Shown: one piece after another, positions 10,561 through 63,293 of the stretch
How the letters are laid out: every line of letters starts with the position of its first letter
How positions within the stretch are numbered: the first letter of the stretch is position 1
Sequence record: PP438435.1
DNA length: 64,000 nucleotides
Strand: one strand, 5' to 3'
Notes under the pieces: model-generated
The model's input: the letters and a program-made list of their open reading frames with translations, nothing else
The model's database searches: none
Told to the model about the DNA's origin: nothing
Position numbers and translations under genes: made by a program

Positions 10561-10606
10561 CTAGGCGCCTAGGGGGCATGCTCGCGGCAAGATAGCCTAG
10601 TGTCAA
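10561..10606 (-). promoter_or_regulatory. Putative dnaB promoter region with CTAGGCGCCTAG(G) operator
   Basis: Palindrome core at 10561-10573 (13/14 match to CCTAGGCGCCTAGG); minus-strand TTGACA at 10606-10601 followed by a CTAGGC half-site. -10 element not clear. Confidence 0.6.
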
Positions 10607-15281: not shown

Positions 15282-16283
15282 ATGCTGATCCGTCGCTTTA
15301 TTGGTCATGTGTTGATGGCCCTGCCCATCGTCGCGTGCGCTGCTTCCGCCACTGCCCAGGATGCGGTGCCCATGCCCGCGCCCGAGGTCGCCCAGGCTGA
15401 AGCAGCGCCCCCCGTCGAAACGCCGCCTGTGACGGCTTCGCAGGACACAGCAGGCGCTGCTTGGCTGGAGGCGCTGCAGACGCAGTATCCACTCTCGCCG
15501 GGCCAGGTGAAGGAGCTGAGGGCTCGGGATTCCGCGGTGTCCGAAGCGGCAATGTCACGCCCGACGCCTGCGGCAGCGCGCAGCGACATCATCTCGGTGA
15601 GCTTGGAGCCTGGCGCGTCCTCGCCCGTGATCGAGCTGTTGCACGGTTTCGCGACGAGCATTGAGGTGCTCGATGCGACTGGCCAGCCATGGCCCGTGTC
15701 GGTCCCTACGATTGGTGACGCTGAGGCTTTCAGCGTGAACGTCGTCGGAGCGTCGCTTTCCGAAGAGGTGGCGCAAGCCGGCGTGTCGACCCCAGCGGGT
15801 ATCGGGAGCGTCATCACGCTTGCTCCCCTTCGCAAGTTCGCTGCGACCAACCTGATCGTTGTTTTACAGAATCAATCGCGACCGATTAGCGTGGTCCTGA
15901 AGGCTGTCGAGCCCACAGCAACAACGGAGTTCCGTGATCGCGTCACGATCTCGGTGCAGGGCGTCGGGCCCTACGCAAAAAGCGTGTCGGCGAGGGGATA
16001 CGAACACCTGGATGCAGGCGAGGACCTGCGTTCCGCGCTGATCGGACGCCCGCCGCGTGGAGACGCCAAGGAGATTCTGGCGGCGGATCTCCCCGCTGGC
16101 CTGCGCGCATGGCGCGCGGGGAACACGCTCTGGATTCGGACGAATGCCACGTTGATCAGCCCCGCGCATGAAGCGAGTGTCGCTGGCGGTGCGCACCGTG
16201 CGTACCGACTCAGGTATCTGCCTGTCGTCGTAATGAGCGAAGCCGGCACGCTGAAGGAAATCAATCTCCAGGAGGCTCTGTGA
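15282..16283 (+). CDS. icmK: DotH/IcmK (TraN-like) T4BSS core protein
   Basis: Signal peptide; VSLEPGASSPVIELLHGFATSIEVLDATGQPWPV. Confidence 0.9.
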   Translation: MLIRRFIGHVLMALPIVACAASATAQDAVPMPAPEVAQAEAAPPVETPPVTASQDTAGAAWLEALQTQYPLSPGQVKELRARDSAVSEAAMSRPTPAAARSDIISVSLEPGASSPVIELLHGFATSIEVLDATGQPWPVSVPTIGDAEAFSVNVVGASLSEEVAQAGVSTPAGIGSVITLAPLRKFAATNLIVVLQNQSRPISVVLKAVEPTATTEFRDRVTISVQGVGPYAKSVSARGYEHLDAGEDLRSALIGRPPRGDAKEILAADLPAGLRAWRAGNTLWIRTNATLISPAHEASVAGGAHRAYRLRYLPVVVMSEAGTLKEINLQEAL

Positions 16284-17554
16284 CCAACTCGAATGTTCCG
16301 CCGGTAGAAGTGCCTGGCGTGACCCCTGAAGACGGCGGTCCGGTGATTCGTCGAGGGAAGAAGGGTGCAGCCAAGAGTCCGATGCGGCCCTTCATCATCA
16401 TGGGCGTCGCCGCACTCGTGATGGCAGGCGTGCTGGTCGTGTCCTGGATCCAGTCCATGAAGCCCCAGGTTCAGGAGTCGGCGCGCACCGCACCCGTCGC
16501 CGCGAACGTGGAGAATCCCGGGCTCTCGGCGACGGAGGATCCGACCCCCGCGTACCGCGAGATGGTTCTGGAAGAGAACCGGCGTGCCAGTGAGGCCGCT
16601 TTGAGTGGTGAAGGTGGTCGAGCCGTCGTGCCGCCGCTGCTTGGAGAGCGCAACGCTCCGCGGCAGCCGGACCCCGTCGTCACTTTCGATGATCCGCCGG
16701 CGCGTCAGCAGCCGGCTCGAACCACAGGCGGCGCCGTTGACCCCAAGAAGGTGTCCGCGCTCGTGGCTGAGAGTCGCCGCCTCCAGGCGCATTGGACGTC
16801 GCTGGGTCCGGCTGTCAGCACACAGGCTGCCCCGTTGCTGGTGCAGCGCGGGGCAGCTACTGACGCGGCTGCCGCTGCTGGCGGCGCGATCGGCGACGGG
16901 CCTCAAGTGCCTCTATTCGTTGTGCAGACCGCGGTCATGGAGACCGGCGCCAATTCGGACTATCCCGCACCGGTAGTGATGCGTTTGACCGGTGGCCCCT
17001 TGCGCGGAGCCCGGATTGTCGGGGAGTTCCGCGCAAGCTCGACGCAAGGTGTCAGTGATCGTGTGCAGCTGCGCGTATCGAGGATCGAAGTCGACGGCGT
17101 GGTGTATCAGACCGATGGCTTGGCGGTCGACCCCGGCACCCGCATCCCCGCGATCGAGGGCGACATCAATCGCCATCTCGCGCGCAACATTCTGGCGCGC
17201 GGCAGCGTGGCGTTCTTGCTCGGCTATGCGGGTGGCATCACCAGCGGCGCTCGCACCAGCTTCTCCGCGGACGGTGGCTTCGTGACGTCTTCACTCCGTA
17301 CGGGTGACCTGTTCCGCGCAGAAGCATCGCGAGAGGCCGCGTCTGCGGCAAGCGAGATTCGTATCCGGCAGCCTACTGTCACGGTGCCGGCAGGGACCCC
17401 CGTGGGCGTTGTCTTCCTCGAAGGACTGAAGTCGGCGGAGACGTCCGGCGCCAGTTCACGCGGATATGTTGCCGGTGCTGCACCAGCACCTGATGCGGCC
17501 AGCAGAGACGCTACGGGCGGTCAGCTGGAGTTCTCGACGGGCGAGTTCGAGTAA
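16280..17554 (+). CDS. icmE: DotG/IcmE (TraO, VirB10-like) T4BSS protein
   Basis: N-terminal TM; AVMETGANSDYPAPVVMRLTGGPLRGARIVGEF; TVTVPAGTPVGVVFL. Confidence 0.88.
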   Translation: MTNSNVPPVEVPGVTPEDGGPVIRRGKKGAAKSPMRPFIIMGVAALVMAGVLVVSWIQSMKPQVQESARTAPVAANVENPGLSATEDPTPAYREMVLEENRRASEAALSGEGGRAVVPPLLGERNAPRQPDPVVTFDDPPARQQPARTTGGAVDPKKVSALVAESRRLQAHWTSLGPAVSTQAAPLLVQRGAATDAAAAAGGAIGDGPQVPLFVVQTAVMETGANSDYPAPVVMRLTGGPLRGARIVGEFRASSTQGVSDRVQLRVSRIEVDGVVYQTDGLAVDPGTRIPAIEGDINRHLARNILARGSVAFLLGYAGGITSGARTSFSADGGFVTSSLRTGDLFRAEASREAASAASEIRIRQPTVTVPAGTPVGVVFLEGLKSAETSGASSRGYVAGAAPAPDAASRDATGGQLEFSTGEFE

Positions 17555-19940: not shown

Positions 19941-22900
19941 ATGCTTGGTCTCATCGATCGCGGCCTTCGCGCCCTGGATCTCAATTTCTGGTGGATTCTG
20001 CGCAGCTTGGGGCTGAATGCGCCGTCGTTCTGTTCGCTCGATTCTGTGGACGGCACGCACTGCCTGGTGACCACCTCCAGTGACCTCGTTTCGGTGCTCG
20101 AGCTTGGCGGGACGCGGCACACGGTCACGGATGCGAACTTCGATGCGGTGATGCGCACACTGGCTCTCAAGCTCAGCGCGCACTTCGCGGGCACGCTGGC
20201 GCATCGCCTGCAGGTCGTCTTCGTGCGCGACAATGGAATCGAAGCGCTCGACCGGGAGCTGACCGAAGTGCTGTCGCCGAGCCTGTCTGCCGCGCGCACT
20301 CTCGGTCTGCAGGTCGAGGACCTGCTGTCGACGCGAGCCGTCAAGCTCGCTGAACACTGCGCTCTGGAGCGAGCGTACTTGGTGGTCACGACCACACCGC
20401 AGGCGATGTCGACGATGGACCGGCGCGCCGCCACAGGTGAGCTCAACAAGATCAAGCGGGAGATTCCCGCTGCACCCGACGCCTTGCGTCCAGTGCCTGG
20501 TCTCCCGGGGCTCATGGAGTCGCATCGGTCGCTGCTGGAGGCGCTGCGCAACGACTTTCTGCATCTGGGGTATCACGCAACCCTGCTGAAGGCGGGTGAC
20601 GCGCTGCGCGTCATCCGGCTGCAGGTCGACCCTGAGTGGACGGATCCGTCGTGGACAGCGTCCATCCCGGGCGACGGTAAGCCGATCGCGCGACGCGCTC
20701 GCGCCCCGGAGGCGGGCGCATCGCCGGAAGATGCGAGCGCGATCTTCTGGCCGAGCCTCGCACGCCAGTTGATTCCGCGCGGCGCCGAGCCGTTGTCCAG
20801 CCAGGTGCTGAAGATCGGCGATCGCCTTTATCAGGGCGTGAGCATGTCGCTGGGCCCTTCGCAGCTAGAGCCCTTCAGCGCGCTGTTCGATCGTCTCAAC
20901 GAGACGCACATCCCCTACCGGTTGAGCTTTCGGATCAGCGGCGCCGGCGTCGATGATCTTGAGATTTCGCTGCGGCGGATCGCCGCCATGTTCTCAACCT
21001 CGCGCACCGTCAAGAACGCACTGAAGGAGGCTGTCGACGACAGGGCGGATGGCCTGAAGCGCGTCGGCTTCCAGCTGGACGCATGCACCTGGGTGCACAC
21101 CTCCGATGGAGTGCAGGATCGGATGGCGCTCAGTCGCGCCGCGTCGCGCCTCGCGCGCACGATTCAGGGCTGGGGCGGTTGCGAGGTCGAGGAGCGGCAG
21201 GGGAGCCCGGTCACCGCTGTGTTTTCGACGGTGCCCGGTCTGCTGGACCGTGGCGCGGGGACGCTCTCGGTGCCGCCCGTCGAAGATGCTGTGGCGTTGT
21301 TGCCGTTCTCTCGCCCGGCGTCGCCGTGGACGGCCGGCTCGCTGATCCTGCGTACCCCCTGCGGCAAGATCTACCCGCACGAGCCCAGCAGGCAGGTTCA
21401 GACCGCGCTGGTGAATCTGGTGTACGCCCCGATGGGCGCCGGTAAGTCCTTTCTGCTGAACGCGATGAACACCGGCCTTGTGCTGTCGCCTGGGCAGGAA
21501 CAGTTGCCCTACATTCGTATCCTCGACATTGGCACGTCGAGCTCCGGTCACATCTCCCTCATTCGCGAAGGCCTGCCACAAGAGCTCCGTCATCTGGTCG
21601 TTTATCGCCGGCTGCAGAACCTGGTGTCGGACGCCATCAACGTGTGCGATACGCCGATTGGAATGCGGTATCCGCTCGCTTCGCAGCGTAGCTTTATCTC
21701 GAGCTTCTGCTGCCTGCTGGCTAGTTCCCTCGAGGGGCATATCAGCCCGGACGTGCCATCGGTGATCAACCGTGCGATCGATGAGGCCTACCGGGTCAAG
21801 GATTCGGAAGAGCCGAATCGGTATGACCGTGGCGTCGATCTCGATGTGGATGCCGCGCTGGATCAGCTCAACATCACGCCGGATGATCGGACGACCTGGT
21901 GGGAAGTGACGGATGAGCTCTTCGCGCGGGGCTCCGTGGTGAACGCCGTCCGCGCCCAACGGTACGCTGTGCCGACGCTGGGTGACGTGGCAGCGGCCAC
22001 CAGCAGCGAGCGCGTGAAGTCGGTGTTCCGCGCCGAGGAAGGAGACGCGATCTGCGGCTACACGTTCCGCCTGTTGACTGACGCTCTGCGCGAGTACCCC
22101 ATCATCTCGCGGCAAACGCGCTTTGACCTGGGTGCTGCGCGCATCGTCAGTCTCGACCTGCAGGAGGTCACGCCGAAGGGCGGGTCCGCGGCAGAGCGAC
22201 AGACGGCGATCATGTACCTGCTGGGCATGTACGTTCTCACGAATGAGTTCTCGATCACTGAAGAGAACGTCGATGCCGCGAAGATGCCCCCTGCCTATCG
22301 GGAGCATCATTTGCGCGTCGCGAAGCGGATCAAGTCGATTCCCAAGCGCATTGTGCTCGATGAGCTGCATCGAGCCATGGCGGCCGGACCCTTGGTCTCA
22401 GGCACCATCGAGAACTTCATTCGCGAGGGCCGTAAGGACAACGTTGAGGTCACGCTGGCCAGCCAGCAGCTCGAAGATTTCTCGAAGACGATGGTGAGTC
22501 TCGCGACCTCGATTTGGATCTTGGGCTCAGGCGCACAGTCTCGTGACGAGACGATGGAGCGCTTCAAGCTGGGGCCGGAAGTCGTTCCGATCCTGGAGCG
22601 TATCGGCAAGCCGAGCGCGAAGGGCAGTCGTTTCCTCGGTGTCTTCGATACGCGCAACGGCCGCTATGTGCACGAGCTGATGTTGACGCTGTCGCCCACG
22701 GAGATGTGGGCCTACAACACGAACGCGGAGGACCGCGAGGTCCGCGATGGTCTGTACGCACGGATTGGCGGTGCCGCGGCGCGCTTCGTGCTCGCCAAGG
22801 CCTTCCCTGAAGGCTCTGCATTCTCCGAGATCGATCGTCGCAAGGCCGCGCTGGCGCGTGCAGGGCGCGCGGCAAGTGAGGAGGCCGCGACGCGCAATGT

Positions 22901-23015
22901 GATCGACACGCTCATCAAGGAACTGATGGATCTCTACGATCGCCAGATGGGCCAGCACGACGCGCTCGATCTGGTGGACCCGGCTGTGGCCGCCATGGAA
23001 CAGGAAGCACACTGA
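19941..23015 (+). CDS. icmB: DotO/IcmB (TraU, VirB4-like) ATPase
   Basis: 1024 aa; Walker A APMGAGKS, Walker B LDELH, IFWPSL, FIREGRK...VTLASQ, LTLSPTEMWAYNT. Confidence 0.93.
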   Translation: MLGLIDRGLRALDLNFWWILRSLGLNAPSFCSLDSVDGTHCLVTTSSDLVSVLELGGTRHTVTDANFDAVMRTLALKLSAHFAGTLAHRLQVVFVRDNGIEALDRELTEVLSPSLSAARTLGLQVEDLLSTRAVKLAEHCALERAYLVVTTTPQAMSTMDRRAATGELNKIKREIPAAPDALRPVPGLPGLMESHRSLLEALRNDFLHLGYHATLLKAGDALRVIRLQVDPEWTDPSWTASIPGDGKPIARRARAPEAGASPEDASAIFWPSLARQLIPRGAEPLSSQVLKIGDRLYQGVSMSLGPSQLEPFSALFDRLNETHIPYRLSFRISGAGVDDLEISLRRIAAMFSTSRTVKNALKEAVDDRADGLKRVGFQLDACTWVHTSDGVQDRMALSRAASRLARTIQGWGGCEVEERQGSPVTAVFSTVPGLLDRGAGTLSVPPVEDAVALLPFSRPASPWTAGSLILRTPCGKIYPHEPSRQVQTALVNLVYAPMGAGKSFLLNAMNTGLVLSPGQEQLPYIRILDIGTSSSGHISLIREGLPQELRHLVVYRRLQNLVSDAINVCDTPIGMRYPLASQRSFISSFCCLLASSLEGHISPDVPSVINRAIDEAYRVKDSEEPNRYDRGVDLDVDAALDQLNITPDDRTTWWEVTDELFARGSVVNAVRAQRYAVPTLGDVAAATSSERVKSVFRAEEGDAICGYTFRLLTDALREYPIISRQTRFDLGAARIVSLDLQEVTPKGGSAAERQTAIMYLLGMYVLTNEFSITEENVDAAKMPPAYREHHLRVAKRIKSIPKRIVLDELHRAMAAGPLVSGTIENFIREGRKDNVEVTLASQQLEDFSKTMVSLATSIWILGSGAQSRDETMERFKLGPEVVPILERIGKPSAKGSRFLGVFDTRNGRYVHELMLTLSPTEMWAYNTNAEDREVRDGLYARIGGAAARFVLAKAFPEGSAFSEIDRRKAALARAGRAASEEAATRNVIDTLIKELMDLYDRQMGQHDALDLVDPAVAAMEQEAH

Positions 23016-27172: not shown

Positions 27173-27253
27173 CTGCTCCAAGCAGATGACTTGGAGGCCC
27201 CCGCATGAGCGTTCGCAGCGACCAACCGATCCCTTGCTGTGGGGTGCACCCTC

Positions 27254-29421: not shown

Positions 29422-29463
29422 CGCATGCCCGCTTCCGCGGGCGCGGAATCAAGGAGAACGACG

Positions 29464-32899: not shown

Positions 32900-32907
32900 A
32901 AGAGACC

Positions 32908-50976: not shown

Positions 50977-53900
50977 ATGATCCAGTGGATTGATCTGTCC
51001 GCCCACGGCTTCCAGCTGCGCGGGGCGCAGCGCGAGGGCGAATCGCGCCGCGTCGTTGCTGTGCCTGATCCGATCGAGGCGGATCTGTCCGCGAGCGTTG
51101 TCGAGGGTCTCACGGGGCTCGGCTTCGAGCGCAGTGGCTGGCCCGCGGTGTGGCACCGCGAGGCGCGCGGGCTGTTGATGGCGCAGGTCCTTGGCCGCTT
51201 CCCTCAAGGTGTGCTGTCGCCGATCGCTGTGGAGGAGCTCTTCACAGCACCGTATCCGGACGGGCGTGACGGCTCGCCGCTGGGACGCTTGGCGGAGCTT
51301 CTGTCGGAACAGCGATCAGCGCCGAATGACATGCTTGGCACCGGCACGGCTTTGGTGCAGTTTCTTGCTGCTGCGCATCGTGAGTCCGGCGAGATCATCT
51401 GGGCGCGCTGGGCTGACGTCGAAACCATTGAAACCCTCGCCGCTGCCGATGCGCAGAGTATTGCGCGCTGGATGGAAGGCCAGCTGCGCATGCGGGCGGT
51501 GCGTACGTCGGACGACCCCGTACGCGATGTCGCCGATCCGGTTCTTGCAACACCGGAGCTGCGAGGGCGTAGCGGCTTCGAGCTGCGACGCGCACTAGAA
51601 GAGTGGAAACAGCATGTCGAAGCTCCGTTGTTGCGGACGCTTGACATTGACGAGGCCCGCATTCGCGATGTCGAAGCCTTGCTCGGCGAGACGCCGCGCG
51701 TTGAGCTCGCGCGGCACTGCGTTGGCGCGTCGAGGCGCGCGGTGGCTTTGGAGCGTGGCCGGCTCGAGGCGGCCGAGAAGCGCGCGTCGGACGCCGAGTT
51801 CGAGGCCGTTGTCGCTGAGTGGGGGCCGTACGTGTCGCCCAATGAGGGCGCGGATGTGCGAGGGCTGATGATTGAGGCGGGCCTGGATCCCGAGGGTCTG
51901 GCGGTCGCGCTTGAAGACGGCGAGCTTCGCGCGCTCAGGCCCGCAGATTCGGGTGCGGTTGCGTTCTTCGGTCGCGCGAGCGAGATGCTGGGCTGGACGG
52001 TCACGAGCACCGCCAGCCTGCCGATGTCGATCGTGACGGCTTCGCGGGAGGTGGCCGCGCGGGTGGTCGCGCGGCGTGACGCCGCGGCGAATGTGGGGCC
52101 GGTGGTGCTCTTGCAGCAGGCTGGTGGCAAGGTCCTGGCGCTGGATGAGCGCTTTGTCCGCCTGATCGAAGCAATGGCGCCCGGTGGGACGTGGCGCGGC
52201 CCGGACCGCACCGAGCAGGAGCACGCGGTCGCGTGGGGCGGCGGTGGCGTGGCGTACGAGCGTGACGGGGCGCTCGTGGCTATGTTGGCGCCCTTGCGCC
52301 ACATCGTGGCGCAGTGCGATAGGCAACTGCCTGAGATCCTGGCGCGCGCAGCGGCAGGTTTCCCCGATCGTGCGCGGCCTGCCGCTGCTCTCGCTGCGGA
52401 CGGCGCTGTGTACCGAGGCGCGCCTCTTGGCGCGCCGCCGGCGGCGCGCGTGGATCTGGATGTGTCGGCATGGCTGCCCCCAACGGTGCAGTCTGGCGCG
52501 AGCACCTTCGTTACGGTGATGTACGTCGGCGTGCCGGCCGACGTTGCGCAGCGCGCCGAGAGTGCGCATGACGCAGGTGTGTCCGTGCCCTGGGCCGAGA
52601 TCGAGTCGCTTTCGTATGGGCGCGTGTTGCGGGATGTCGAAGACGGGCATCCGGTTCCGTTTGCGGGTGAGGTGCTGCCAGACCGCGTGGTTGTCGGCTG
52701 GCGCCGATCCGACCTGCAGACCACTCTCAACCAACTGCGCAATCGGCGAGCCTACCCGGACACCACGTGGTTCCTGGAGGCCGCGCCCGGCGCCGCGCCG
52801 GTGCTGGAAGTCCACGTTCCGTTCGTTCGGGAGCGCGCGTCGACCTACAAGGAGCGGGTGATTATCCCCGCCCACGAAGACCAGTCGCTGATCATTCTGC
52901 GGCGACCTGTCGACGCCGAGACGTGGAGCTCTGCCGGCGTGTTCGAGCCGGTGCCGGCCCGTGGGCTCGCCGACGATGCGTTGGAGCGCGGCCTGGTGCG
53001 TGTGGCGCATGCGGACGATCCGGCAATCGCTCAGGCTGTGTCTGCATGGGAAGCGCAGCGTTCTGCGGAGGACCTGGACGCGGAGCTCGTGTCGCCGGAC
53101 GACAGCTCGGTTGCGTCGGAGGCCGACGGCCCCGACAGCGATGCCGACGACGAGGCAGAGGAGTCGCGCCCCCCCGAGGGGAAAGCCCGCATCGAGGACT
53201 TCGGCGAGAAGATCGGAGGCGCGCGCAAGGACATCAACGGCTTGGGATCACGCGCCCTTGAAGTCGCAATGACGGAGACGTGGACCAGCGACGAGCTGCG
53301 CGAGTACCTGACCAAGGATCGCCTCTGGCCGTTCTCGGTCAAACAGCGACTCGCTGAGGGTGCCGAACCAGGCGTCGTCGCGCTGGAGAAGGACGTCCGC
53401 GATTACGTGCGTCCGGAGTACCACCGTGTCGGCCGCGGGACGCGCGGCAACGTGCTCGCATGGGACGATGCCGCGGCTCGGCGCTGGGCATCGGGTGTAC
53501 GCGTCATGGCGAGCGTCTTCGAGGGTGTGAAGACGGTCGCTGAACTGAAGGCGCGCGCCAGCGCCGCCTTCGATGCCGCAAACCCCGTGGCTCGGGCACG
53601 CCTTGCACTGACGGAAGGGGTGAACCTGCGCCGCTACCGCGACTACTGGCGTAACTGGGTAGGGGGCTTGGCCGCGCAGGACGAGTCTGTGCGCTTCCGC
53701 GTGGTTGGCCAGATCGAGGCGAGCGGCCGCGTCCTCATGGCGCGCCGCGAGCGCAACGAGAACCGGCGTGATGTGCGCGAGCAGGTCAAGCTCGCGCGTC
53801 CGGAAAAGGGCAAGGCGCCGCGCATCAGCGAGCGCCCGCATCTGGCGGAAATCGGCCGGGTCGGCCCCGAGGTGCGGAGCGGTAACGTCACCCCCGAGTT

Positions 53901-56475
53901 GCTGGCGACGACCTTCGGGTTCCGCGGCGGCGAGTTCGGGAACTGGCTGGGACAGAAGGAGCGCCAGGAGGTCCTCAACTTCGCGTTCGAGTCCCTGCAC
54001 GATCTGGCGCGTGTGCTGGGCATCCCAGCCAGTGCCGTCAGCTTGAACGGCGAGCTTGCGATCGCGTTTGGCGCACGCGGCACTGGCGGCAAGCGCTCGG
54101 CGGCCGCGCACTACGAGACGGGTCGGCGCGTCATCAATCTCACCCGCATGAACGGCGCCGGCTCACTGGCGCACGAGTTCGCGCATGCGTTCGATCACTA
54201 TGTCGCCCGGACCCTGGCGCCGGATCTCGGCCGCGTGTTCGTCACCGAGAGCGGCGGCGATGTCACCGGCTATCGACTGCGCGGGTCGGGGCTTCGTGAG
54301 GAGGTCGCGCGGGCAATTGCCGGCGTGGTCCAGTCCTTGTTCTGGTATCGACCGTCCGATGAAGAGCGCGTCGCCGCCTCGCGTTCCGAGGCCGTCGCTG
54401 CGATGGATGAGATCCAGCGGCTGTGGCAACTTCCGCTGGCCCATCCGGAGAAGGCGCTGGCCTGGCAGGTCTTTGGTGGCAACGACGCGATCGTGCTTGC
54501 GGATACGCGGGTAGCGGCGGGCGTGCAAGCGGTTAACCTCGCGTTCATGAGGCTCTGTGATGAGCTGCGCGAGGGGCTGGCGACGCTCGAAAAGGCACGC
54601 GCGATGCTGGATGACGCGCCGACCGCGGCCGGCGAGCTGGTCGCCGAGGCTGGGCAGCGGGTCTACGAGGCGCAGCGCGCGATCACGGCAGCGTGGGACG
54701 AAAATCGCAAGGAGCCGAATGAGGCTCTGCGTCAGATTGCACCGCACCTCCGGCTGCAGTGTGCCGGTGGGTACGCTTCCAGTGCCGCCGATCGCGTTCA
54801 GCGGCGCATCAATGAGTGGCAAGCCCTGATCGTGCGGCTCGCGACGGGCAGCATCACGTCCGAGTATCAGACCCAGTATCTGCGGGACGCCCTCGCGATC
54901 GACGAGTTTGAGCAGCGAAAGCCTGCGTACTGGGCGCAGCCGATCGAGCTGTTTGCGCGTGCTTTCGAGAGCTGGGTGTTCGATCGCCTGCAGGAGAAGG
55001 GCCAGCACTCGGACTACCTGGTGCACGGCGTCGAGGACAAGGGGTACACGCTGGCCGAGCACGGCGCCGCGGTCAACGCAGGCGATGTGCGAGATCCCGA
55101 AAGCGGCCGCGGCCTCTTCCCGTATCCGCGCGGCGTCGAACGTGCTCGCATCAATGCTGCCTTTGACGCGCTGGCCGGCGCCCTGAAGCACGAGGTGACA
55201 CCGGAAGGGCATTGCAAGCTGTATCAGCGCCGCCCCAGCCCGCTGGGCGCAGGGCAGGGGATGTCGGTGGAGGCGGTGGTGCGCGCCGTGCATCGCTTCC
55301 GTGATGCGCTGGCCAACACGTGCGGGGTCGAGGTCGTGGCGCAGGTCGAGGACCTTCCTGCGCCGGCGCCAGCCGATGTTGCTGGTCTCTTCGACGTCCC
55401 GACCCGTACGGTGTATCTGGTGGCGGCGAATCTGCGTTCCCCGGGCGAGGTGAATGCGACGCTGACCCACGAGATCTTGCGCCACGCGGGGCTGTTCGCC
55501 CTCTTGGGCGAGCACAAGGAATCGGTGCTGGAATCGATCTGGGCGGACAACCCGAGCGTCCGCCAGCGGGCCGACGCTCTGCGGTCGGAGGGCATCGAAG
55601 AAGGTATCGTCTTCTCGCGCACAGAGGCGACCGAGGAAGCGCTGGCGCAGCTCGCCGATGAAGGCGCACTGGTCAGGCTTTCGACCTGGGGGCGCGCTGC
55701 AGCGTGGATCCGATCGGCAATCCGGGACGTGGGCCTGGGGTCGCTCGTGGGGCGCTGGGATGATCGGGACGTGGCGTATCTCGTCAGTCGCGCTGCACGC
55801 GCGTCGGGCCTGCGGCCGCACACGTTGCCGACGGCGGGCAGCGCGACGCCGGATGGGTGGATGATGCGGTTCCTGGAGGCGCCCCGCCGCGCACTCACCG
55901 CAGGGGCTTTCCTGGGCTCGATGCTGGGTGCCGGTGTGCTGTCGGGGCTGCAGCCGGCGCCGCCGCGCAGCGACCCGTACCAGCCTCCCCTGAGCTGGCC
56001 CGAGATCTACGCGCCGGAGTGTGTGGCCGACAGCGCGGCGCGAGAAGACACCGCCCGGCGTTGGGCCCGTTTCGGCATGCCAGCCGAAGCCTTCAGTGCG
56101 GAGGTGCGCTCTGGGTTGATGTCCGACATCGAGCGGGCGCGCGCCGCGCTTGAGGGAGAGGCAGATCGCATCCATGCGCGATTCGACGCGGTGGAGGAGG
56201 CTCTGATGAAGCGCGTGGAGTCGGGCGACCCGCTGGTCGCTCGCGCCGCGCGGGTGCAACTGGAGAGCGCGCGCTCTGCGAGAGACGAAGCGTACAGCGC
56301 TGCATCGAGCCAGGTGTTCGGCAACGTCGATGCGCAGGTGCTCGCAGCGTTGAATGCGCAGTGCCGGGAAATCGCGGACGCGTACGCGCCGCCGGTGCGG
56401 TGGCCGGATCCGAGGGAGATGGAAGCCCTCGAGGACGAGTCCGCGGCCGCGTCTGTACGCTCGCCGTCGCTGTGA
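50977..56475 (+). CDS. Large polyvalent protein with LPD1-associated zincin metallopeptidase and a second HE-motif peptidase-like domain
   Basis: RIEDFGEKIGGARKD; FGFRGGEFGNW...IAFGARG...AAAHYE...INLTRMNGAGSLAHEFAHAFDHY; YWAQPIELFARAFE; LTHEILRHAGL. Confidence 0.82.
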   Translation: MIQWIDLSAHGFQLRGAQREGESRRVVAVPDPIEADLSASVVEGLTGLGFERSGWPAVWHREARGLLMAQVLGRFPQGVLSPIAVEELFTAPYPDGRDGSPLGRLAELLSEQRSAPNDMLGTGTALVQFLAAAHRESGEIIWARWADVETIETLAAADAQSIARWMEGQLRMRAVRTSDDPVRDVADPVLATPELRGRSGFELRRALEEWKQHVEAPLLRTLDIDEARIRDVEALLGETPRVELARHCVGASRRAVALERGRLEAAEKRASDAEFEAVVAEWGPYVSPNEGADVRGLMIEAGLDPEGLAVALEDGELRALRPADSGAVAFFGRASEMLGWTVTSTASLPMSIVTASREVAARVVARRDAAANVGPVVLLQQAGGKVLALDERFVRLIEAMAPGGTWRGPDRTEQEHAVAWGGGGVAYERDGALVAMLAPLRHIVAQCDRQLPEILARAAAGFPDRARPAAALAADGAVYRGAPLGAPPAARVDLDVSAWLPPTVQSGASTFVTVMYVGVPADVAQRAESAHDAGVSVPWAEIESLSYGRVLRDVEDGHPVPFAGEVLPDRVVVGWRRSDLQTTLNQLRNRRAYPDTTWFLEAAPGAAPVLEVHVPFVRERASTYKERVIIPAHEDQSLIILRRPVDAETWSSAGVFEPVPARGLADDALERGLVRVAHADDPAIAQAVSAWEAQRSAEDLDAELVSPDDSSVASEADGPDSDADDEAEESRPPEGKARIEDFGEKIGGARKDINGLGSRALEVAMTETWTSDELREYLTKDRLWPFSVKQRLAEGAEPGVVALEKDVRDYVRPEYHRVGRGTRGNVLAWDDAAARRWASGVRVMASVFEGVKTVAELKARASAAFDAANPVARARLALTEGVNLRRYRDYWRNWVGGLAAQDESVRFRVVGQIEASGRVLMARRERNENRRDVREQVKLARPEKGKAPRISERPHLAEIGRVGPEVRSGNVTPELLATTFGFRGGEFGNWLGQKERQEVLNFAFESLHDLARVLGIPASAVSLNGELAIAFGARGTGGKRSAAAHYETGRRVINLTRMNGAGSLAHEFAHAFDHYVARTLAPDLGRVFVTESGGDVTGYRLRGSGLREEVARAIAGVVQSLFWYRPSDEERVAASRSEAVAAMDEIQRLWQLPLAHPEKALAWQVFGGNDAIVLADTRVAAGVQAVNLAFMRLCDELREGLATLEKARAMLDDAPTAAGELVAEAGQRVYEAQRAITAAWDENRKEPNEALRQIAPHLRLQCAGGYASSAADRVQRRINEWQALIVRLATGSITSEYQTQYLRDALAIDEFEQRKPAYWAQPIELFARAFESWVFDRLQEKGQHSDYLVHGVEDKGYTLAEHGAAVNAGDVRDPESGRGLFPYPRGVERARINAAFDALAGALKHEVTPEGHCKLYQRRPSPLGAGQGMSVEAVVRAVHRFRDALANTCGVEVVAQVEDLPAPAPADVAGLFDVPTRTVYLVAANLRSPGEVNATLTHEILRHAGLFALLGEHKESVLESIWADNPSVRQRADALRSEGIEEGIVFSRTEATEEALAQLADEGALVRLSTWGRAAAWIRSAIRDVGLGSLVGRWDDRDVAYLVSRAARASGLRPHTLPTAGSATPDGWMMRFLEAPRRALTAGAFLGSMLGAGVLSGLQPAPPRSDPYQPPLSWPEIYAPECVADSAAREDTARRWARFGMPAEAFSAEVRSGLMSDIERARAALEGEADRIHARFDAVEEALMKRVESGDPLVARAARVQLESARSARDEAYSAASSQVFGNVDAQVLAALNAQCREIADAYAPPVRWPDPREMEALEDESAAASVRSPSL

Positions 56476-56479
56476 ACTG

Positions 56480-56532
56480 AACACGCCACCCGGTGGGCCC
56501 GCAGGCGCGAGGGGTCCACCGGGTGGCGTGTT
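56480..56532. repeat. 17-bp perfect inverted repeat between the two giant genes
   Basis: AACACGCCACCCGGTGG / CCACCGGGTGGCGTGTT with 19-nt loop. Confidence 0.85.
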
Positions 56533-56648
56533 GCTGTGGGCGTTCTGAAAGCGTTGGGTCGCGGGCCTCACCCTTGCCGTGTGGGCGTATTGGATACATG
56601 ATGCGCCTATGCCCCGCAGGAAGCGGGGCGGTCATGCAAGGACGCCCC

Positions 56649-59600
56649 ATGTCGACTCCCGCTCTCGAAACCGTCAAGTGGTTCGATCTCTCTTCCTACA
56701 GCCTCACGCTGATGCTGATGCGCGGCGACCAGGGCAAATCTTGGTTGCTCGCCTACGGGGCTGTCGACGCGCATGCGCAGGCTCTGGAGCGTCTGGGGAT
56801 GCGGCCGCATCCTCAGACGCCGGGATCGTGGTTCCGCGGGTTCGGCGCCGGGCAGACGCTGCGCGCGCAGGACGTCGCTGCGGCGTTCCCGGAGGTCAAG
56901 TACGTGGAGCTGCCCCGTGGCCGAGTCGTCGTCGAAACGCTGGCATCTCAGCGCACGGCGTCGAGCGAGCCGGCAGCCATCTCCAGGGCGCCGGCGGCAC
57001 AGCAGCGGAGCGAGTTCGGGCGGATGGTTGCGCGGGTCCTCGCACAGTCCGGGCTCGTCGTCTCGGACGAGCGAGCGGAGATGCGCCTCTATGGCGATGT
57101 GTCGCAGCCCGCGGTGCGGTTGCAGTCCAGCACCGCAGACGCGGCGCTACGGCTGCGCATCGAGCGTCTCGGCGCGGGGCGCACGGTGATGGGGTCGGTG
57201 GTGGCTCAGCTGGATGGCGCAGGACAGTGGCATGTGTCCGGGGCGTCGACGTGGACAGGCGCCTCCGGCTATCGCGATGCCGCCGACACCCTGGGCGCGA
57301 TGGCGCTGATGCGGGCCCTTGTCGAGGCAGGGCTGGCGTCGCAAGCGCCCGCGTTCGCCGCCGACTTCGTCGAGGTGGACGAGACCATTTCGTCCGACGT
57401 CGTCGGCCGACCCTTCAAGCTCGAGACCTCCGGTGGCGCGGTGGCGACGGCGTGGGTCACGGCATACAGCGTCGCGGGTGGCCGCCAATGGCTCGATGTC
57501 ACTTTCGAGGACGACATGGGGCGGCCGCGACTGCGGGTCGCCGCCTTCGAGCGGGCGCCGGGGCGCACTGTGGAACTGTGCGTTGCCGAAGCGCTTCAGA
57601 GCGCGGAAGCTGCGCTGCCCGTGGGTGCATGGCGCGCCCCGGACCAACCCGCCCCGCGGCGCGTCGCGCGCTCGACAACTGCGTGGCTTCAGGAGACTGG
57701 CAATGAGCTCGAATCCCCGCGTGCGTCCCCTGCACGAACTGATACCCCCCGCGTCGACGCCGGAAGCGCTGGCCCAGCTGGATCTGGAGATGCTGATGGC
57801 AGCCGGCGACCCGGCCGCGGCGATCGCGAACTCGGTGACGGCGTCGCCGACGCAGGCGACGCCGGTCTGGCAGGAGGATCTGACGAATCAGATCTACGAG
57901 AAGCTGCTGGCGTCGAATCCGCCAGACCCGACGCTGACGTACGAGGCGCGGTTGATGCACATGGCGAAGCTGATGGAGGAGGCGCGGGAGCACGCCCGCA
58001 GCAGTGGTCTGCCGTCGCGGGGCGCGACGCAGGTCGCCGCCGCCGTCTTGGCGGCCCGAGCAGCGCCCCGCGAGGATCAGACCACCGACTGAGTGCGGTT
58101 CCAGCAGAGGTTAGCTTCAACCACGCGCGGGCGACCGAAGCGAATATGGCGGCGCTGCGCGCGCTGAAGCGCATTGAGCAGCGGCCTGCGGGCGAGGACG
58201 CCGACCCCGAGGATCTTGCAGCGGTCTCGCGCTACATTGGCTGGGGCGGCCTGCCGCAGGTGTTTGCGCGTCATAGCGACTTGCACCGTGCCTTCCATGA
58301 TGAGCTGCAGTCCCTTCTGAGCGAGTCCGAATACGAGGCCGCGAAGGCTTCCACGCTCAATGCCCATTTCACCGCTTACCCGGTCATTGATGGCATCTGG
58401 CAGGCGCTGCAGCACCTGGGCGTGCGCGAGGGCGTGGGCCTGGAGCCGGGTGCCGGCGTTGGGCGGTTCATCGGCCGACGCCCGGAGGCGCTGTCGGAGT
58501 CGGTCGAGTTCGTCGCGGTCGAACAGGACGGTGTGTCGGCGCGAATCCTGAAAGCGCTGTATCCGGCGGCACAGGTGCATGCCGTGGGCTACGAGCGCAC
58601 GGCCATCCCCGACGGCAGCGTCGACTTCGTGGTGGGCAACGTCCCATTTGGCGCGTACAGCGTCTACGACCCGCGCTACAAGACGTTGCGCGCCCCCATC
58701 CACGACTACTTCATCGTCAAGAGCCTGGACAAGCTGGCGCCCGGTGGCGTGATGGCGGTGATCACGTCCACGGGCACGCTGGACAAGCAGAGCCCGACGG
58801 CGCGCGAGGCCATGTACGCGAGTGCGGATCTGCTGGGCGCGTTTCGCATGCCTGGCACCACGTTCCGGGACAACGCGGGCACCGACGTCACCACCGACCT
58901 GCTGGTGTTTCGCAAGCGGCTTCCGGATGACGTGGCGCAACCGTTCGATTGGCGCGATCTCGTGTCCATGAAGGGTGCCGACGACAGCGAAATCGCCGTC
59001 AACCGAATCTTCCAGGGTGCGAAGGACGGCAATTCGCGAGGCGTCGTGTTGGGCTGGCTCGTCAGCGATCGGAGCCAGTACGGCCGCGAGCGCGTGGTGG
59101 CTACCCATCGGCATCCCAAGAGTCGCGAGGAAGCGCTGCCCGTGGGCCGATGGCCAGAGGTGTACCGCAAGGTGCTCCCTGCGGGCGTCCACGCGCCCAT
59201 CGACACGCCCCAGGAGCAGCCGCTGCTGTCACCCGCGGACATGGCCACCAACGCCGCGCGCGAAGGGCGCTACGTGGTGGAAGACGGACGCGTGTGCTGC
59301 ATCTACGAAGGCCAACCGGTGGCGTTGCCGGGCCTGAGTCGCCTGGATGAGTCGCGCCTACGGCTGATGATTCCGGTGCGCGACACCCTGCGCGCGCTTG
59401 TCGACGAGCAGCTCGTGGGGTGCTCGGACGAGCGCTTGGCGGAGTTGCAGGCGCGGTTGAACGCGGCCTACGACGCTTTTGTCGGGACACATGGGCCAAT
59501 GTCGCGGCCTGCGAATCGCCGGCCATGGATCGATGATCCGGACGCGATGCTGGTGCTGGCTGCGGAGGTGTACGACGCGGACTCGAATACCGCAACACGC

Positions 59601-62600
59601 GCTGCAATCTTCAGTGAGCGGACGCTCGGTCCACGCCAAGCGGCAGCGACGGTGGAGTCCCCCACGGAAGCGCTCACGTTGTGCATCAACGAACTGGGGC
59701 GTGTGGACCCCGCGCGCATCGAGGCGCTGAGCGGAAAGCCCTGGGAGAGCGTGCGCGAAGCCTTGCGCGGCGAGATCTTCTTCGACCCCGAGATCGGGCG
59801 CTGGGATCTGGCGGCGCGCTATCTGTCCGGGCACATCCCGCGCAAGCTCGACATCGCGCGCAGCGCAGCCGAGACCGACCCTTCGATCGCGGAGAACGTG
59901 GCAGCGCTCGAAGCCCGTCTGCCGCGGCGTGTTGTCGCCGAGGAGATCGATGTCACGCTCGGCAGCCCGTGGGTCGGTGCCGACTATGTGCAGGCATTCG
60001 CGCAGGAGGTGCTCGGCGGCATCGTGCCTACCGTGCTCCACAACCCCTCGATCGCGTCGTGGCGCGTCGAGGGCGCCAAGTCAGGAGCGCCGACGCGCTG
60101 GAGCACCCAGCGCATGGATGCGTGGCGGCTGCTTGAGCTCGCGTTGAATGGGCAGTCTCCGCAGGTGTGGGACTCGATCGAGGTCAAGGGCAGCGAAGTG
60201 CGCGTCCTGAACACTGAGCAGACAGCGCTCGCGATCGAGATGCAGAAGCAGATGAAGCATGAGTTCGCGGGTTGGATCTTCCGCGACAGTGAGCGTCGGG
60301 CGAAGCTCGAAGACCGGTACAACTACCTCTTCAATGGCTACCGCAGCCCGGACTACTCCGGGCTCAAGCTGCGCGTGCCGGGCCTTGCGCTGGGCATGGC
60401 GTATCGCGATCACCAGACGACGGGGATTGCGCGCGGGGTGCTGGAGCAGAATACGCTGTTGGCGCACCCGGTGGGGTTCGGCAAGACCGCGACAATCGCT
60501 GGCACGGTCATGCTGGGGCGCTCGCTCGGCATCATCAACAAAGCCGGCATCGTGACGCCGAAGAATGTCATCTATCAGTTCGCCGCGGAGATCGTGCGGT
60601 TCTTCCCGAACGCGCGGGTACTCACCATTCGCCCGGAAGACTTGAGCCGAAAGGGCCGCGCGCAGTTCTGGCGGCGCGTGCAGGTGTCGAATCCGGACGT
60701 GATCCTCGTGACTCCGGAGGCCTTCAAGCGACTTCGACTGCCGGCAGAGGCCGAGCGGCGCTATCTCGCTGAAGAGCTGGCCCGGATCGACATGGCGCTG
60801 GCGTGGGAGGCCGAGGTCAATGGCAGCAAGAGCAGCAAGTCTGCGACGCGTGAAGTCAAGCGCCTGGAGCGGCTGAAGCAGGGCATGAAGGCGCGGCTTG
60901 AGCGACTGCTGAACCTGGATGAGAAGGACGACAACCGCATCTCGCTGAAGGATCTCGGCGTCGACGCTCTGTGCGTGGATGAAGCGCATCGCTACAAGAA
61001 CCTGCAGGTGGTGTCGCGAGAGCGCGTGCTGGGCGTGCCCACGGCGGCGAGCCAGCGCGCCTCCGATATGCACTCGAAGGTGCGCTACATCCAGAACATG
61101 GGCGGCCGCGTCGTCTTCGCCACCGGCAGCTTCATCACCAACACGCTCGCCGAGGCGTTCAACGTCCAGCGCTACCTGATGCAGGACGAGATGGAGGCCC
61201 AGGGTGTCGGCTTCTTCGACGCCTGGAAGGCGCAGTACGCGCACGTGGTCGGCTCGTTGGAGCCGGATCCGGGTGGTTCGGGCTATCGAACTGTGTCGCG
61301 CATGGCAGAGCTGCGCAATGTTCCCGAGTTGGTGGCCATGCTGGCGCAGGTTGTCGATGCTGTGGCGGACGACGCCTCGAAAGTCGGGGGTCGCCCCGAT
61401 CCGGTGTTCGTCACGCGCAGCGTCGAACCCACTGAGCTGCAGGCGCTCTATCGTGAAGCGCTGGCCGAGCGCGTCACCTTCATGCGTCAGCATCCAGCAG
61501 AGGCCAAGAAAGCCGGAGACAACATCCTCGTCGTCCTGGGCGACGCGCGGCGCAGCGCGCTTGACCTGCGCGCGCAGTTCCCGCATGCGCCGGCAGCCGC
61601 ATCCGGCGGGAAGCTCGCTGCTGTGGCTGCCGACATCCACGAGCGCTATGTGGCGTCGCAGGATCGCTTGGGGACACAGGCAGTGTTCCTTGACTTCGCG
61701 ACCCCGCCGTCGAGCAAGAAGCTCGATCGCGGTTGGAACGCATACGAAGAGCTCACCGCGAGGCTGGTCGCCCTCGGCATCCCGCGCGAGGAGATCGGGT
61801 GGGCGCACGACGCCAAGAACGACAAGGCGAAGGCGGAGCTCTTTCAGCGCGTCAAGCGTGGCGAGCTGCGCGTCGTGATCGGCTCTACGGAGAAGATGGG
61901 GGAGGGCACGAACATGCAGGATCGCATGGTGGCTATCCATCACCTGAACGCGCCGCATCACCCGGGGCACATCGTGCAGCGCAATGGACGTGGCATTCGC
62001 TTCGGCAACCTCAACACCTCGATCGCCATCTGCACGTGGGTGACCAAGGGGCTGCTGGAGGACTGGAACTGGCACCTCGTCACCCTGAAAGACGGCTTCA
62101 TTCGGCAGGTGACGGAAGGGCTCGCAGCGCACAGCGATGGCCAGGGCCTGGCGCGGCGCATTGTCGAGGATTCGGCGGCCATGTCGTTTGCGGACATCGA
62201 AGCGCACGCGTCGGACAACCCGCTGGTGAAGGACAAGGCCGTGATCGACGAACGTGTCCAGCGGCTGGAGATGCTGGAGCGCGCCGATGGGCAGGACCGC
62301 GGTGCTGCTCGCTCGGAGCTGAGCTTTTTGGAATCGAGCATTGCGAGTGACATGCGCGCTATCGAGCTCGCGACCGATTTCGCGGAGCAGGCCAAGATTC
62401 ACAGCGAGGAGGCGGAAGCCGCCCTTCTGCAAGAAGCGCGGAAGGGCGCGTCGGAACGCGTCGAGCGCATTTACGAGGGAGAGGTCGAACTCGCACAGGC
62501 CGATCCGCAGGCGTTGGCCAAGGCGCAGGCCGGTCGCAAAGAACGCTATCGGCTGATCGAGGAAGAGACGTTCGCGATGCGCGTGCGCGGTGTCGCACAG

Positions 62601-63293
62601 TTGGGGCGCGTTGCTGCAGGCAAGGCGCTGATCCGCGAGGTGGAGCGCATCAGCGGTAAGTTCGCCGCACGCGCCCCGTCCGTTGCGGAGTACAAGGGCG
62701 CGGCTATCAACCTGGTGCCGACGTATGCCGAGCCGAAGATCGAGATGTCATGTCGCGGCGTTGCGGCGAAGGTGACGACGGAGACCTCTGCAGATCCGGT
62801 CGGTATCGTTCGGCGCATCGAGAACCTTCATGCACAGATCGTGCGGGAGGCGGATGAGCTTGTGGCTCGCGTCGCTTCACGGCGGGAGAAAATGGCGGAG
62901 ATCCAAGCGCGCCTCGATGCGCCCTGGGGACACCGCCAGGAGCTGATGGATGCCCGGATCGAGCAGTCGCGCATCAATACCGAGCTTGCTGTGATGAACG
63001 AAGGTCAGGTCAAGGAGCCGCATGGCGCTGCGCTTGAGCGGTTCCTCCAGGCGTTCGAGGCGGCGGGCGGGGTGTTGCCTGTCGCGATGGAGGGCGCGGC
63101 GCCGACAGCCTTCGATGAGTTCGATTTCGAGGCCTTCAGTCTGGCCGAGGACGCCGCCGAAGAGGAGGAGGCCGAGGATGAAGGCTCCGAGCTGGGCGAA
63201 GCGGGTGAAACTGCGGCGTGCGACACTGATGAGGAGGATGCGTGCGGAGCCGCTGAACAGGTTCCGCGCGGCAAGCAGATTGCCATGGCATAA
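56649..63293 (+). CDS. DarB-like giant N6-adenine DNA methyltransferase / SNF2 helicase polyvalent protein
   Basis: YIGWGGL, LEPGAGVGRF (motif I), VGNVPFG (motif IV), AHPVGFGKT, VDEAHRYKN, GEGTNMQ, QRNGRGIRFGN; AAGGA RBS before ATG 56649. Confidence 0.9.
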   Translation: MSTPALETVKWFDLSSYSLTLMLMRGDQGKSWLLAYGAVDAHAQALERLGMRPHPQTPGSWFRGFGAGQTLRAQDVAAAFPEVKYVELPRGRVVVETLASQRTASSEPAAISRAPAAQQRSEFGRMVARVLAQSGLVVSDERAEMRLYGDVSQPAVRLQSSTADAALRLRIERLGAGRTVMGSVVAQLDGAGQWHVSGASTWTGASGYRDAADTLGAMALMRALVEAGLASQAPAFAADFVEVDETISSDVVGRPFKLETSGGAVATAWVTAYSVAGGRQWLDVTFEDDMGRPRLRVAAFERAPGRTVELCVAEALQSAEAALPVGAWRAPDQPAPRRVARSTTAWLQETGNELESPRASPARTDTPRVDAGSAGPAGSGDADGSRRPGRGDRELGDGVADAGDAGLAGGSDESDLREAAGVESARPDADVRGAVDAHGEADGGGAGARPQQWSAVAGRDAGRRRRLGGPSSAPRGSDHRLSAVPAEVSFNHARATEANMAALRALKRIEQRPAGEDADPEDLAAVSRYIGWGGLPQVFARHSDLHRAFHDELQSLLSESEYEAAKASTLNAHFTAYPVIDGIWQALQHLGVREGVGLEPGAGVGRFIGRRPEALSESVEFVAVEQDGVSARILKALYPAAQVHAVGYERTAIPDGSVDFVVGNVPFGAYSVYDPRYKTLRAPIHDYFIVKSLDKLAPGGVMAVITSTGTLDKQSPTAREAMYASADLLGAFRMPGTTFRDNAGTDVTTDLLVFRKRLPDDVAQPFDWRDLVSMKGADDSEIAVNRIFQGAKDGNSRGVVLGWLVSDRSQYGRERVVATHRHPKSREEALPVGRWPEVYRKVLPAGVHAPIDTPQEQPLLSPADMATNAAREGRYVVEDGRVCCIYEGQPVALPGLSRLDESRLRLMIPVRDTLRALVDEQLVGCSDERLAELQARLNAAYDAFVGTHGPMSRPANRRPWIDDPDAMLVLAAEVYDADSNTATRAAIFSERTLGPRQAAATVESPTEALTLCINELGRVDPARIEALSGKPWESVREALRGEIFFDPEIGRWDLAARYLSGHIPRKLDIARSAAETDPSIAENVAALEARLPRRVVAEEIDVTLGSPWVGADYVQAFAQEVLGGIVPTVLHNPSIASWRVEGAKSGAPTRWSTQRMDAWRLLELALNGQSPQVWDSIEVKGSEVRVLNTEQTALAIEMQKQMKHEFAGWIFRDSERRAKLEDRYNYLFNGYRSPDYSGLKLRVPGLALGMAYRDHQTTGIARGVLEQNTLLAHPVGFGKTATIAGTVMLGRSLGIINKAGIVTPKNVIYQFAAEIVRFFPNARVLTIRPEDLSRKGRAQFWRRVQVSNPDVILVTPEAFKRLRLPAEAERRYLAEELARIDMALAWEAEVNGSKSSKSATREVKRLERLKQGMKARLERLLNLDEKDDNRISLKDLGVDALCVDEAHRYKNLQVVSRERVLGVPTAASQRASDMHSKVRYIQNMGGRVVFATGSFITNTLAEAFNVQRYLMQDEMEAQGVGFFDAWKAQYAHVVGSLEPDPGGSGYRTVSRMAELRNVPELVAMLAQVVDAVADDASKVGGRPDPVFVTRSVEPTELQALYREALAERVTFMRQHPAEAKKAGDNILVVLGDARRSALDLRAQFPHAPAAASGGKLAAVAADIHERYVASQDRLGTQAVFLDFATPPSSKKLDRGWNAYEELTARLVALGIPREEIGWAHDAKNDKAKAELFQRVKRGELRVVIGSTEKMGEGTNMQDRMVAIHHLNAPHHPGHIVQRNGRGIRFGNLNTSIAICTWVTKGLLEDWNWHLVTLKDGFIRQVTEGLAAHSDGQGLARRIVEDSAAMSFADIEAHASDNPLVKDKAVIDERVQRLEMLERADGQDRGAARSELSFLESSIASDMRAIELATDFAEQAKIHSEEAEAALLQEARKGASERVERIYEGEVELAQADPQALAKAQAGRKERYRLIEEETFAMRVRGVAQLGRVAAGKALIREVERISGKFAARAPSVAEYKGAAINLVPTYAEPKIEMSCRGVAAKVTTETSADPVGIVRRIENLHAQIVREADELVARVASRREKMAEIQARLDAPWGHRQELMDARIEQSRINTELAVMNEGQVKEPHGAALERFLQAFEAAGGVLPVAMEGAAPTAFDEFDFEAFSLAEDAAEEEEAEDEGSELGEAGETAACDTDEEDACGAAEQVPRGKQIAMA
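57703..58092 (+). CDS. Nested 129-aa gene in the +1 frame of the DarB-like gene
   Basis: AGGAG RBS 7 nt before ATG; canonical GC3 codons in this frame while the host frame reads as a G/D/A/R-rich linker. Confidence 0.75.
   Translation: MSSNPRVRPLHELIPPASTPEALAQLDLEMLMAAGDPAAAIANSVTASPTQATPVWQEDLTNQIYEKLLASNPPDPTLTYEARLMHMAKLMEEAREHARSSGLPSRGATQVAAAVLAARAAPREDQTTD

Follow-up and report, generated by a model that had tools for sequence, protein, structure and literature searches.

Two giant polyvalent proteins of a putative I-type conjugative plasmid begin with copies of one previously unnamed domain family

The 64,000-nucleotide stretch of DNA analysed here (the window) is 100% identical to bases 1-64000 of GenBank record PP438435.1 (208,985 bp, 226 proteins) and encodes two giant proteins, an LPD1-type polyvalent protein (protein 1) and a DarB-like methylase-helicase (protein 2). 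Judged from profile comparisons, the N-termini of both giants are homologous copies of one domain family of about 85 residues, a bona fide and previously unnamed family, set apart here from those LPD domains that are deposited in Pfam. So far, the domain is restricted to I-type conjugative elements, those with a Dot/Icm-like type IVB secretion system (T4BSS). An earlier note, made from the sequence alone, had pointed to the likeness of the two N-termini and suggested a shared recognition domain for transfer; its observation is right, and stronger than that first reading could show.

The domain bears on how conjugation machines select giant polyvalent anti-defence proteins for delivery. In the 2017 survey of polyvalent proteins, 40 domains were left without a function (PMC5512222), and a compact module found on at least six unrelated enzyme architectures, so far only on Dot/Icm-like plasmids, offers a concrete and easily testable handle. 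If it is a delivery or docking tag, the proteins injected by a plasmid would become predictable from sequence and T4BSS biology would gain a new signal class; if instead its target is DNA or the replisome, this would account for methylation of an incoming plasmid early enough to evade restriction.

Results

The two giant genes are adjacent, and each begins with one copy of the domain:

50977..56475, + strand: protein 1, LPD1-type polyvalent protein, 1832 amino acids (aa); open reading frame (ORF), with the same architecture in P0002, P0003, and P0020
50977..51231, + strand: N-terminal domain copy 1, residues 1-85 of protein 1; from the translation and a hidden Markov model (HMM) built without its own family (E=2.6e-12)
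56649..63293, + strand: protein 2, DarB-like N6-methylase and SNF2-type helicase, 2214 aa; start kept in homologues and in the GenBank annotation
56670..56924, + strand: N-terminal domain copy 2, residues 8-92 of protein 2, counted from ATG 56649; from the translation and an HMM built without its own family (E=6.7e-22)

Translation places the peptides quoted in the earlier note exactly where it had located them, and the spacing it claimed between a Trp and a later Phe-Pro pair holds as well (W4..F75-P76 in protein 1, W11..F80-P81 in protein 2). We start protein 2 at ATG 56649 (MSTP...), which is common to four homologues and the GenBank annotation, and not at the first GTG of the ORF (56493), so that the motif begins at residue 9-11. 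BLASTP finds no similarity between the remaining parts of the two proteins (all E>=1), in agreement with the claim that the rest of them is unrelated.

Direct comparisons of the two N-termini gave little. Pairwise BLASTP returned a lone high-scoring segment pair of 13 residues (E=0.02), and word-indexed homologue searches with residues 1-100 provided three clusters or close relatives per family. The HMMs built from a single family did not cross-match, neither model finding the other protein, and hhalign of the two 3-sequence profiles reached a probability of 3-7% (P=0.005), a score equalled in 1 of 400 column shuffles. None of these comparisons is strong enough to decide homology, and on these results the resemblance might be due to chance or merely to the compositional bias of a high-GC genome.

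We searched a combined 7-sequence alignment of both families against 1.84 billion (1.84e9) representative proteins. The profile matched 41 proteins at E<=1e-3, 35 of which are genuine and match it over its whole length; the other six were rejected as false positives, being repeat proteins that match a 30-residue piece many times. The family size of about 35 comes from this single exhaustive profile search, and it underestimates true size and range. The circularity of a query mixing both window families was removed with an HMM of 24 segments from neither family. Among the 747 six-frame ORFs of the window, this HMM recognizes protein 2 at E=6.7e-22 and protein 1 at E=2.6e-12, the next ORF following at E~0.9. 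A profile of the DarB-type sequences only matches protein 1 at E=3.4e-12, and hhalign of the enriched LPD1-type and DarB-type profiles aligns 82 columns with 98.8% probability (E=6.6e-17). Because the leave-out HMM and the enriched hhalign are both significant, homology is established at the level of profiles, and the shared module of the earlier note stands as a homologous domain of about 85 residues; the outcome that the note had named as fatal to it, a profile alignment lacking significance, did not occur. The same two results refute chance and composition as explanations, and low-GC family members, e.g. P0022, P0025, and that of Alteromonas pKD01, also speak against a compositional bias; we regard the probability of such an explanation as close to nil. 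Other searches did not enlarge the family: the only match of the protein 1 domain in GTDB genomes (L006) was spurious and not an ORF, a metagenome scan with the protein 2 domain yielded no additional contig, and against plasmids tblastn found nothing with the domain of protein 2 or with that of a C5 cytosine methylase (see below).

The signature of the family reads W-x-D-L-S-x-[YH]-G-x-x-L ... A-L-x-x-L-G-F ... G-x-W-x-R ... F-P, with W4, D6, L7, [YH]10, G11, L14, L45, G49, F50, W59, R61, F75, and P76 (protein 1 numbering) as the best-conserved positions. These are mainly hydrophobic or structural, together with the W-x-D-L-S-x-Y-G hairpin, and form no catalytic-looking set. The charge of the domain is variable (pI 4.4-11.9, net charge -7 to +7, median +1.5). 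The structure prediction proposed in the earlier note gave the same order of elements for both N-termini, β-β-β-α-β-α-β, at AlphaFold2 confidences (pLDDT) of 84.8 for protein 1 and 88.1 for protein 2 and a pTM of 0.75, the two models resting on one shared alignment and thus not being fully independent. According to these models, a domain of about 85-90 residues folds independently; Pro/Ala-rich linkers follow it directly.

The earlier note had called the domain unnamed, and we find it without a match in Pfam-A, NCBIfam, or the PDB sequences. Pfam scans of the full proteins and of 13 domain sequences left the N-terminal ~85 residues unmatched, with neither ArdC-N (DUF1738) nor ParBc seen even at E<=10; NCBIfam gave no match to it, and no PDB sequence was better than E=0.19. 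The short family members have an empty precomputed Pfam entry ('-'), though the annotation behind it is recent enough to contain PF28553-5. In PDB and BFVD, Foldseek returned nothing at E<1e-3 for either model. Its top matches are weak and serve as leads only: the MotA C-terminal domain, gyrase A, aIF1, and DUF3560-labelled proteins. The C-terminal 'double-wing' DNA-binding domain of phage T4 MotA is, like our domain, small and of mixed alpha/beta type, and it is the top PDB match for the protein 2 model, but the similarity is not significant (E=0.1-0.2 and TM ~0.3 for protein 2, E=1.9 for protein 1; overall E=0.1-1.9, TM 0.28-0.37, probability <=0.47).

Giant polyvalent proteins carry the domains LPD1-LPD40, LPD36 lying directly upstream of a methylase (Iyer et al. 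2017, PMC5512222), and the searched text of that survey mentions no N-terminal module like the one described here. As with the LPDs, ArdC-N, and ParB, the module is small, globular, and uncharacterised and is found repeatedly in giant proteins of many domains on conjugative elements; like the LPDs, it has the methylase-helicase dyad, strawberry-notch ATPases, and LPD1 among its partners. It differs from them in lacking any Pfam LPD, ArdC-N, or ParB match, a comparison that covers the Pfam-deposited LPDs only, in being locked to the N-terminus, and in occurring so far only with I-type (Dot/Icm-like) elements.

The earlier note had asked whether the domain is confined to N-termini, and in 37 of 39 family proteins (the 35 genuine profile matches and members of the window families) the first copy indeed starts at residue 1-21, with a median of 6. 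The domain heads at least six downstream architectures:

LPD1/zincin giant: protein 1 and P0020
N6-methylase and SNF2 helicase: ten DarB-like giants, two with tandem copies of the domain
Strawberry-notch helicase: AAA_34 and Helicase_C_4
C5 cytosine methylase: P0044
T5orf172/MUG113 first, then two domain copies: P0042
DUF6908 giant, 2026 aa: Pseudomonas plasmid pPA15W-NR

P0042 is an exception in position, as its two copies lie downstream of the T5orf172 domain and not at the N-terminal end. A scan of the whole record with the HMM revealed a third carrier in PP438435.1, a 579-aa C5 cytosine DNA methylase (141562-143301, - strand) that starts with MRWMDLRRHG, matches at E=1.6e-13, and has the same architecture as the metagenomic P0044. 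PP438435.1 therefore has three carriers, with proteins 1 and 2 adjacent. We rejected the view that short members of 100-250 aa are stand-alone proteins and treated them as fragments, for two reasons. At least one of them, P0047 (205 aa; L024:5114-8031), overlaps the downstream strawberry-notch (AAA_34) ORF out of frame and is thus the N-terminal piece of a giant gene split by a frameshift; and where a contig size was seen, most of the remaining short members are on contigs of ~1-1.5 kb.

The remaining parts of the two giants are as follows:

54172..54186, + strand: HExxH (zincin-like) motif, residues 1066-1070 of protein 1; motif search, kept in P0020, a reading of the sequence only
54910..55191, + strand: LPD1 domain, residues 1312-1405 of protein 1; Pfam PF18796, 69.7 bits against a cut-off of 27, E=2e-19
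58608..58808, + strand: methylase catalytic region of protein 2, NVPF at residue 664; motif position and a weak Pfam Eco57I match at residues 654-720
60411..62006, + strand: helicase module of protein 2, Walker A GFGKT at residue 1276 and DEAH at residue 1444; weak Pfam DEAD, ResIII, SNF2, and Helicase_C matches
63111..63290, + strand: acidic C-terminal tail of protein 2, E-block-like; 22 D/E and 2 K/R among the last 60 residues

LPD1 is the sole Pfam match on protein 1, the zincin-like HExxH region having none. Protein 2 aligns over ~1650 residues (about 470-2130) with annotated DarB-like antirestriction proteins and N-6 DNA methylases at 29-34% identity. Both giants thus contain polyvalent-associated parts, LPD1 in protein 1 and the dyad of a DarB-type adenine methylase and an SF2 helicase in protein 2, and transfer genes of a conjugative element are encoded in the same window:

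10603..11961, - strand: DotM/IcmP-like T4BSS coupling-complex protein; Pfam DotM_C E=4e-31, NCBIfam DotM_IcmP_IVB E=3e-38, the latter below the model cut-off
14592..15272, + strand: DotI/IcmL; Pfam T4BSS_DotI_IcmL E=2e-37
15282..16283, + strand: DotH/IcmK; Pfam T4BSS_DotH_IcmK E=6e-44
16280..17554, + strand: DotG/IcmE/TraO-like protein; Pfam TrbI E=1e-11, NCBIfam IcmE_DotG and TraO_IncI1 both below cut-off
19941..23015, + strand: IcmB/DotO-like ATPase; 33% identity over 96% of its length to the annotated IcmB of pXCV183 and many plasmids

PP438435.1 was deposited as the complete genome of 'Dolichospermum phage Dfl-JY45', a phage of a cyanobacterium; its GC content is 65.7%. From its gene content, the record seems to be not a cyanophage but an I-type conjugative plasmid from a bacterium of high GC content. 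Ten large ORFs of the record gave no phage structural match, their only matches being of secretin, pilus-ATPase, and pilin type. A capsid-targeting signal, which would suit a phage, was rejected on this ground, and it is further at odds with the other carriers examined, all of which are on plasmids or plasmid-like contigs.

The expectation in the earlier note that the domain is confined to Dot/Icm-type elements was borne out in part. T4BSS genes lie in or next to six of the seven loci examined, and one, the Bosea megaplasmid, has none within 20 kb. Another plasmid, pND6-2 of type MPF_I, also encodes a carrier. Presence of the domain in the plasmid carriers was confirmed by HMM scores, and the mating-pair formation (MPF) types are read from the annotation of a handful of loci:

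pXCV183 (Xanthomonas): strawberry-notch carrier; conjugative, MOBP, MPF_I, adjoining DotI, DotH, DotG, and IcmB
pPA15W-NR (Pseudomonas): two carriers, a strawberry-notch protein and the DUF6908 giant; MPF_I
Shewanella plasmid: strawberry-notch carrier; DotH, DotI, and DotA nearby
Alteromonas pKD01: strawberry-notch carrier; DotI, DotH, and DotD nearby
Metagenomic contig L024: carrier gene ~3 kb from DotI and DotH
Bosea megaplasmid: one carrier; no type IV secretion system (T4SS) gene within 20 kb

The best 25 of 2021 plasmid records matching protein 2 all align from about residue 470 only, and the same holds for the listed phage matches apart from the source record; these DarB-like proteins, related to DarB of phage P1, share the methylase-helicase core (residues ~476-2113 of protein 2, 29% identical to annotated phage DarB-like proteins) but not the N-terminal domain. 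DarB-like versions on an MPF_T Bradyrhizobium plasmid and a MOBQ Roseibium plasmid start ~470 residues later and give no match to the domain HMM, and tblastn with P0012 against a 50,697-record phage collection found no record except the mislabelled source record. Since the same methylase-helicases occur on MPF_T and MOBQ plasmids and in phages without the N-terminal ~470 residues, the domain tracks the element type and not the enzyme.

Discussion

Tentatively, we favour as the best single hypothesis that the domain is a protein-docking or delivery module, because it is locked to the N-terminus, promiscuously fused to enzymes, and so far restricted to I-type elements. It would couple DNA-modifying 'establishment' enzymes to one common partner specific to I-type plasmids. 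This partner would most plausibly belong to the part of the I-type machine that recruits substrates, with DotL/DotM of the coupling complex, an adaptor, or the transfer intermediate of relaxase and DNA as candidates. The docked enzymes would then be handed to the recipient together with the DNA and act before host restriction; in protein 2, the domain could cooperate with the Glu-rich C-terminal tail, a canonical DotM-type signal. The transfer tag proposed in the earlier note is a plausible candidate role. In its full form, we consider it possible but doubtful: the domain would be the first folded module at an N-terminus by which substrates of I-type (T4BSS) conjugation are recognised, a portable tag on enzymes injected before or with the DNA. 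Without recourse to the C-terminal E-block route, it would be read by a dedicated adaptor or by the coupling complex. BLASTP revealed no conserved neighbour gene for an adaptor or chaperone beside the carriers in seven loci.

A precedent for such a module is XVIPCD, a folded recognition domain of ~120 residues in Xanthomonas T4SS effectors that is bound by VirD4 (Oka et al. 2021, PMC8740702). Compared by description only, both are conserved folded domains common to otherwise unrelated cargo of one T4SS, whereas our domain is N-terminal and XVIPCD lies at the C-terminus of antibacterial toxins, in a T4SS of type A. The E-block signal (PMC5802825) belongs to the same secretion-system family as the machinery of the window, which encodes a DotM-like protein, and has the same proposed role, recruitment of cargo to the coupling complex; it differs as a short acidic C-terminal peptide from a folded N-terminal domain of variable charge. 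The domain is neither within the C-terminal ~30 residues nor Glu-rich and acidic; the separate C-terminal tail of protein 2 is Glu-rich and is the closer likeness.

Several observations weigh against a delivery role. The known Dot/Icm translocation signals are C-terminal Glu-rich or E-block sequences bound by DotM (Meir et al. 2018, PMC5802825), and an N-terminal signal would be new. Moreover, protein 2 and all DarB-type family members have an acidic C-terminal tail with 12-25 D/E in the last 60 residues, and the canonical signal may therefore already be present. In the DarB-type proteins (P0005-P0015, P0024, P0028, P0041, and protein 2) a strongly acidic stretch is followed by 10-25 non-acidic residues, which is E-block-like; two DarB-like controls from the MPF_T and MOBQ plasmids have 13-14 D/E balanced by 11 K/R in their last 60 residues. 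Tandem copies of the domain, found in P0014, P0028, P0023, P0029, and P0042, are unusual for a secretion signal. Two giants lack the domain, namely the 2387-aa ART-PolyVal protein of PP438435.1, as seen in the HMM scan of the record, and a DarB-containing protein of 4743 aa on a Teredinibacter plasmid that encodes an IcmB homologue, so that the domain is not a universal requirement. The order DotI-DotH-DotG...IcmB...giant recurs in pXCV183, the Shewanella plasmid, and pKD01; the T4BSS association thus does not stem from independent events and may come partly from the shared ancestry of one plasmid backbone group. The sample, only ~35 clusters, is also small.

Close behind docking or delivery we rank, as a possibility of lower probability, that the domain targets DNA or the replisome and tethers methylases, helicases, and nucleases to the incoming plasmid DNA. 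Its target might be single-stranded DNA or a single-/double-strand junction, a structure of the leading region, the single-stranded DNA-binding protein SSB, the sliding clamp, or primase, and in the recipient, modification would in this way not lag behind synthesis of the complementary strand. Such targeting is consistent with the partner domains, which are mostly DNA-directed (methylases of the N6 and C5 types, SNF2 and strawberry-notch helicases, and the nuclease-like T5orf172), even if LPD1/zincin and DUF6908 have no obvious enzymatic action on DNA. Polyvalent proteins often begin with DNA-anchoring domains, e.g. ArdC-N or ParB (PMC5512222), and the ART-PolyVal giant of a related element has a ParB-like motif at the equivalent position. 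Tandem copies also fit a binding module. The Foldseek match of protein 2 to the DNA-binding domain of MotA points in the same direction, but the structural matches are not significant, and the unconserved charge of the domain is atypical for a generic nucleic-acid binder. Targeting of DNA or the replisome alone would also leave unexplained why the domain is absent from the homologous enzymes of MPF_T plasmids and phages.

A role in assembly or regulation, with no part in delivery, we think unlikely; the domain would then form homo- or hetero-oligomers among protein 1, protein 2, and the C5 methylase, or mediate autoinhibition in the donor. The three carriers in one element, two of them adjacent, would fit this explanation, as would the flexible Pro/Ala-rich linker, the largely hydrophobic conserved surface, and the lack of a conserved neighbouring partner gene. 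However, only one carrier was found in the scanned stretches of pXCV183 (~37 kb), pKD01 (~8 kb), and the Shewanella plasmid (~8 kb), and an oligomerisation domain needs no strict locking to the N-terminus.

Other genes of the element

Two further large proteins of PP438435.1 lie downstream of the window:

66403-73566: ART-PolyVal giant, 2387 aa, with four ART-PolyVal matches; homologue at L005:10137-16868
86907-90608: DUF3584 protein, 1233 aa, full-length match at E=7e-196

The HMM scan found no copy of the domain in the DUF3584 protein. In the L005 homologue of the ART-PolyVal giant, a putative N-terminal ParB-like motif, LMDGHRRW, stands in the place of the domain. The Teredinibacter giant is annotated as one 4743-aa protein at 165433-179664 of Teredinibacter purpureus plasmid Bs12_MP (L029:2434 onward), with a DarB-like methylase-helicase core and an unrelated N-terminus.

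Within the window, a second C5 cytosine methylase (27239-28855, + strand; NCBIfam dcm E=2e-19) lacks the N-terminal domain. The annotated gene downstream of protein 2 (63238-64020, + strand) overlaps its last 56 nucleotides in another frame. A SNF2-family helicase (31151-33252, - strand) adjoins a gene annotated as a Cas4-family exonuclease, and genes for a DUF5131 protein (29425-30558) and a dATP/dGTP pyrophosphohydrolase (24023-24592) are located near this helicase.

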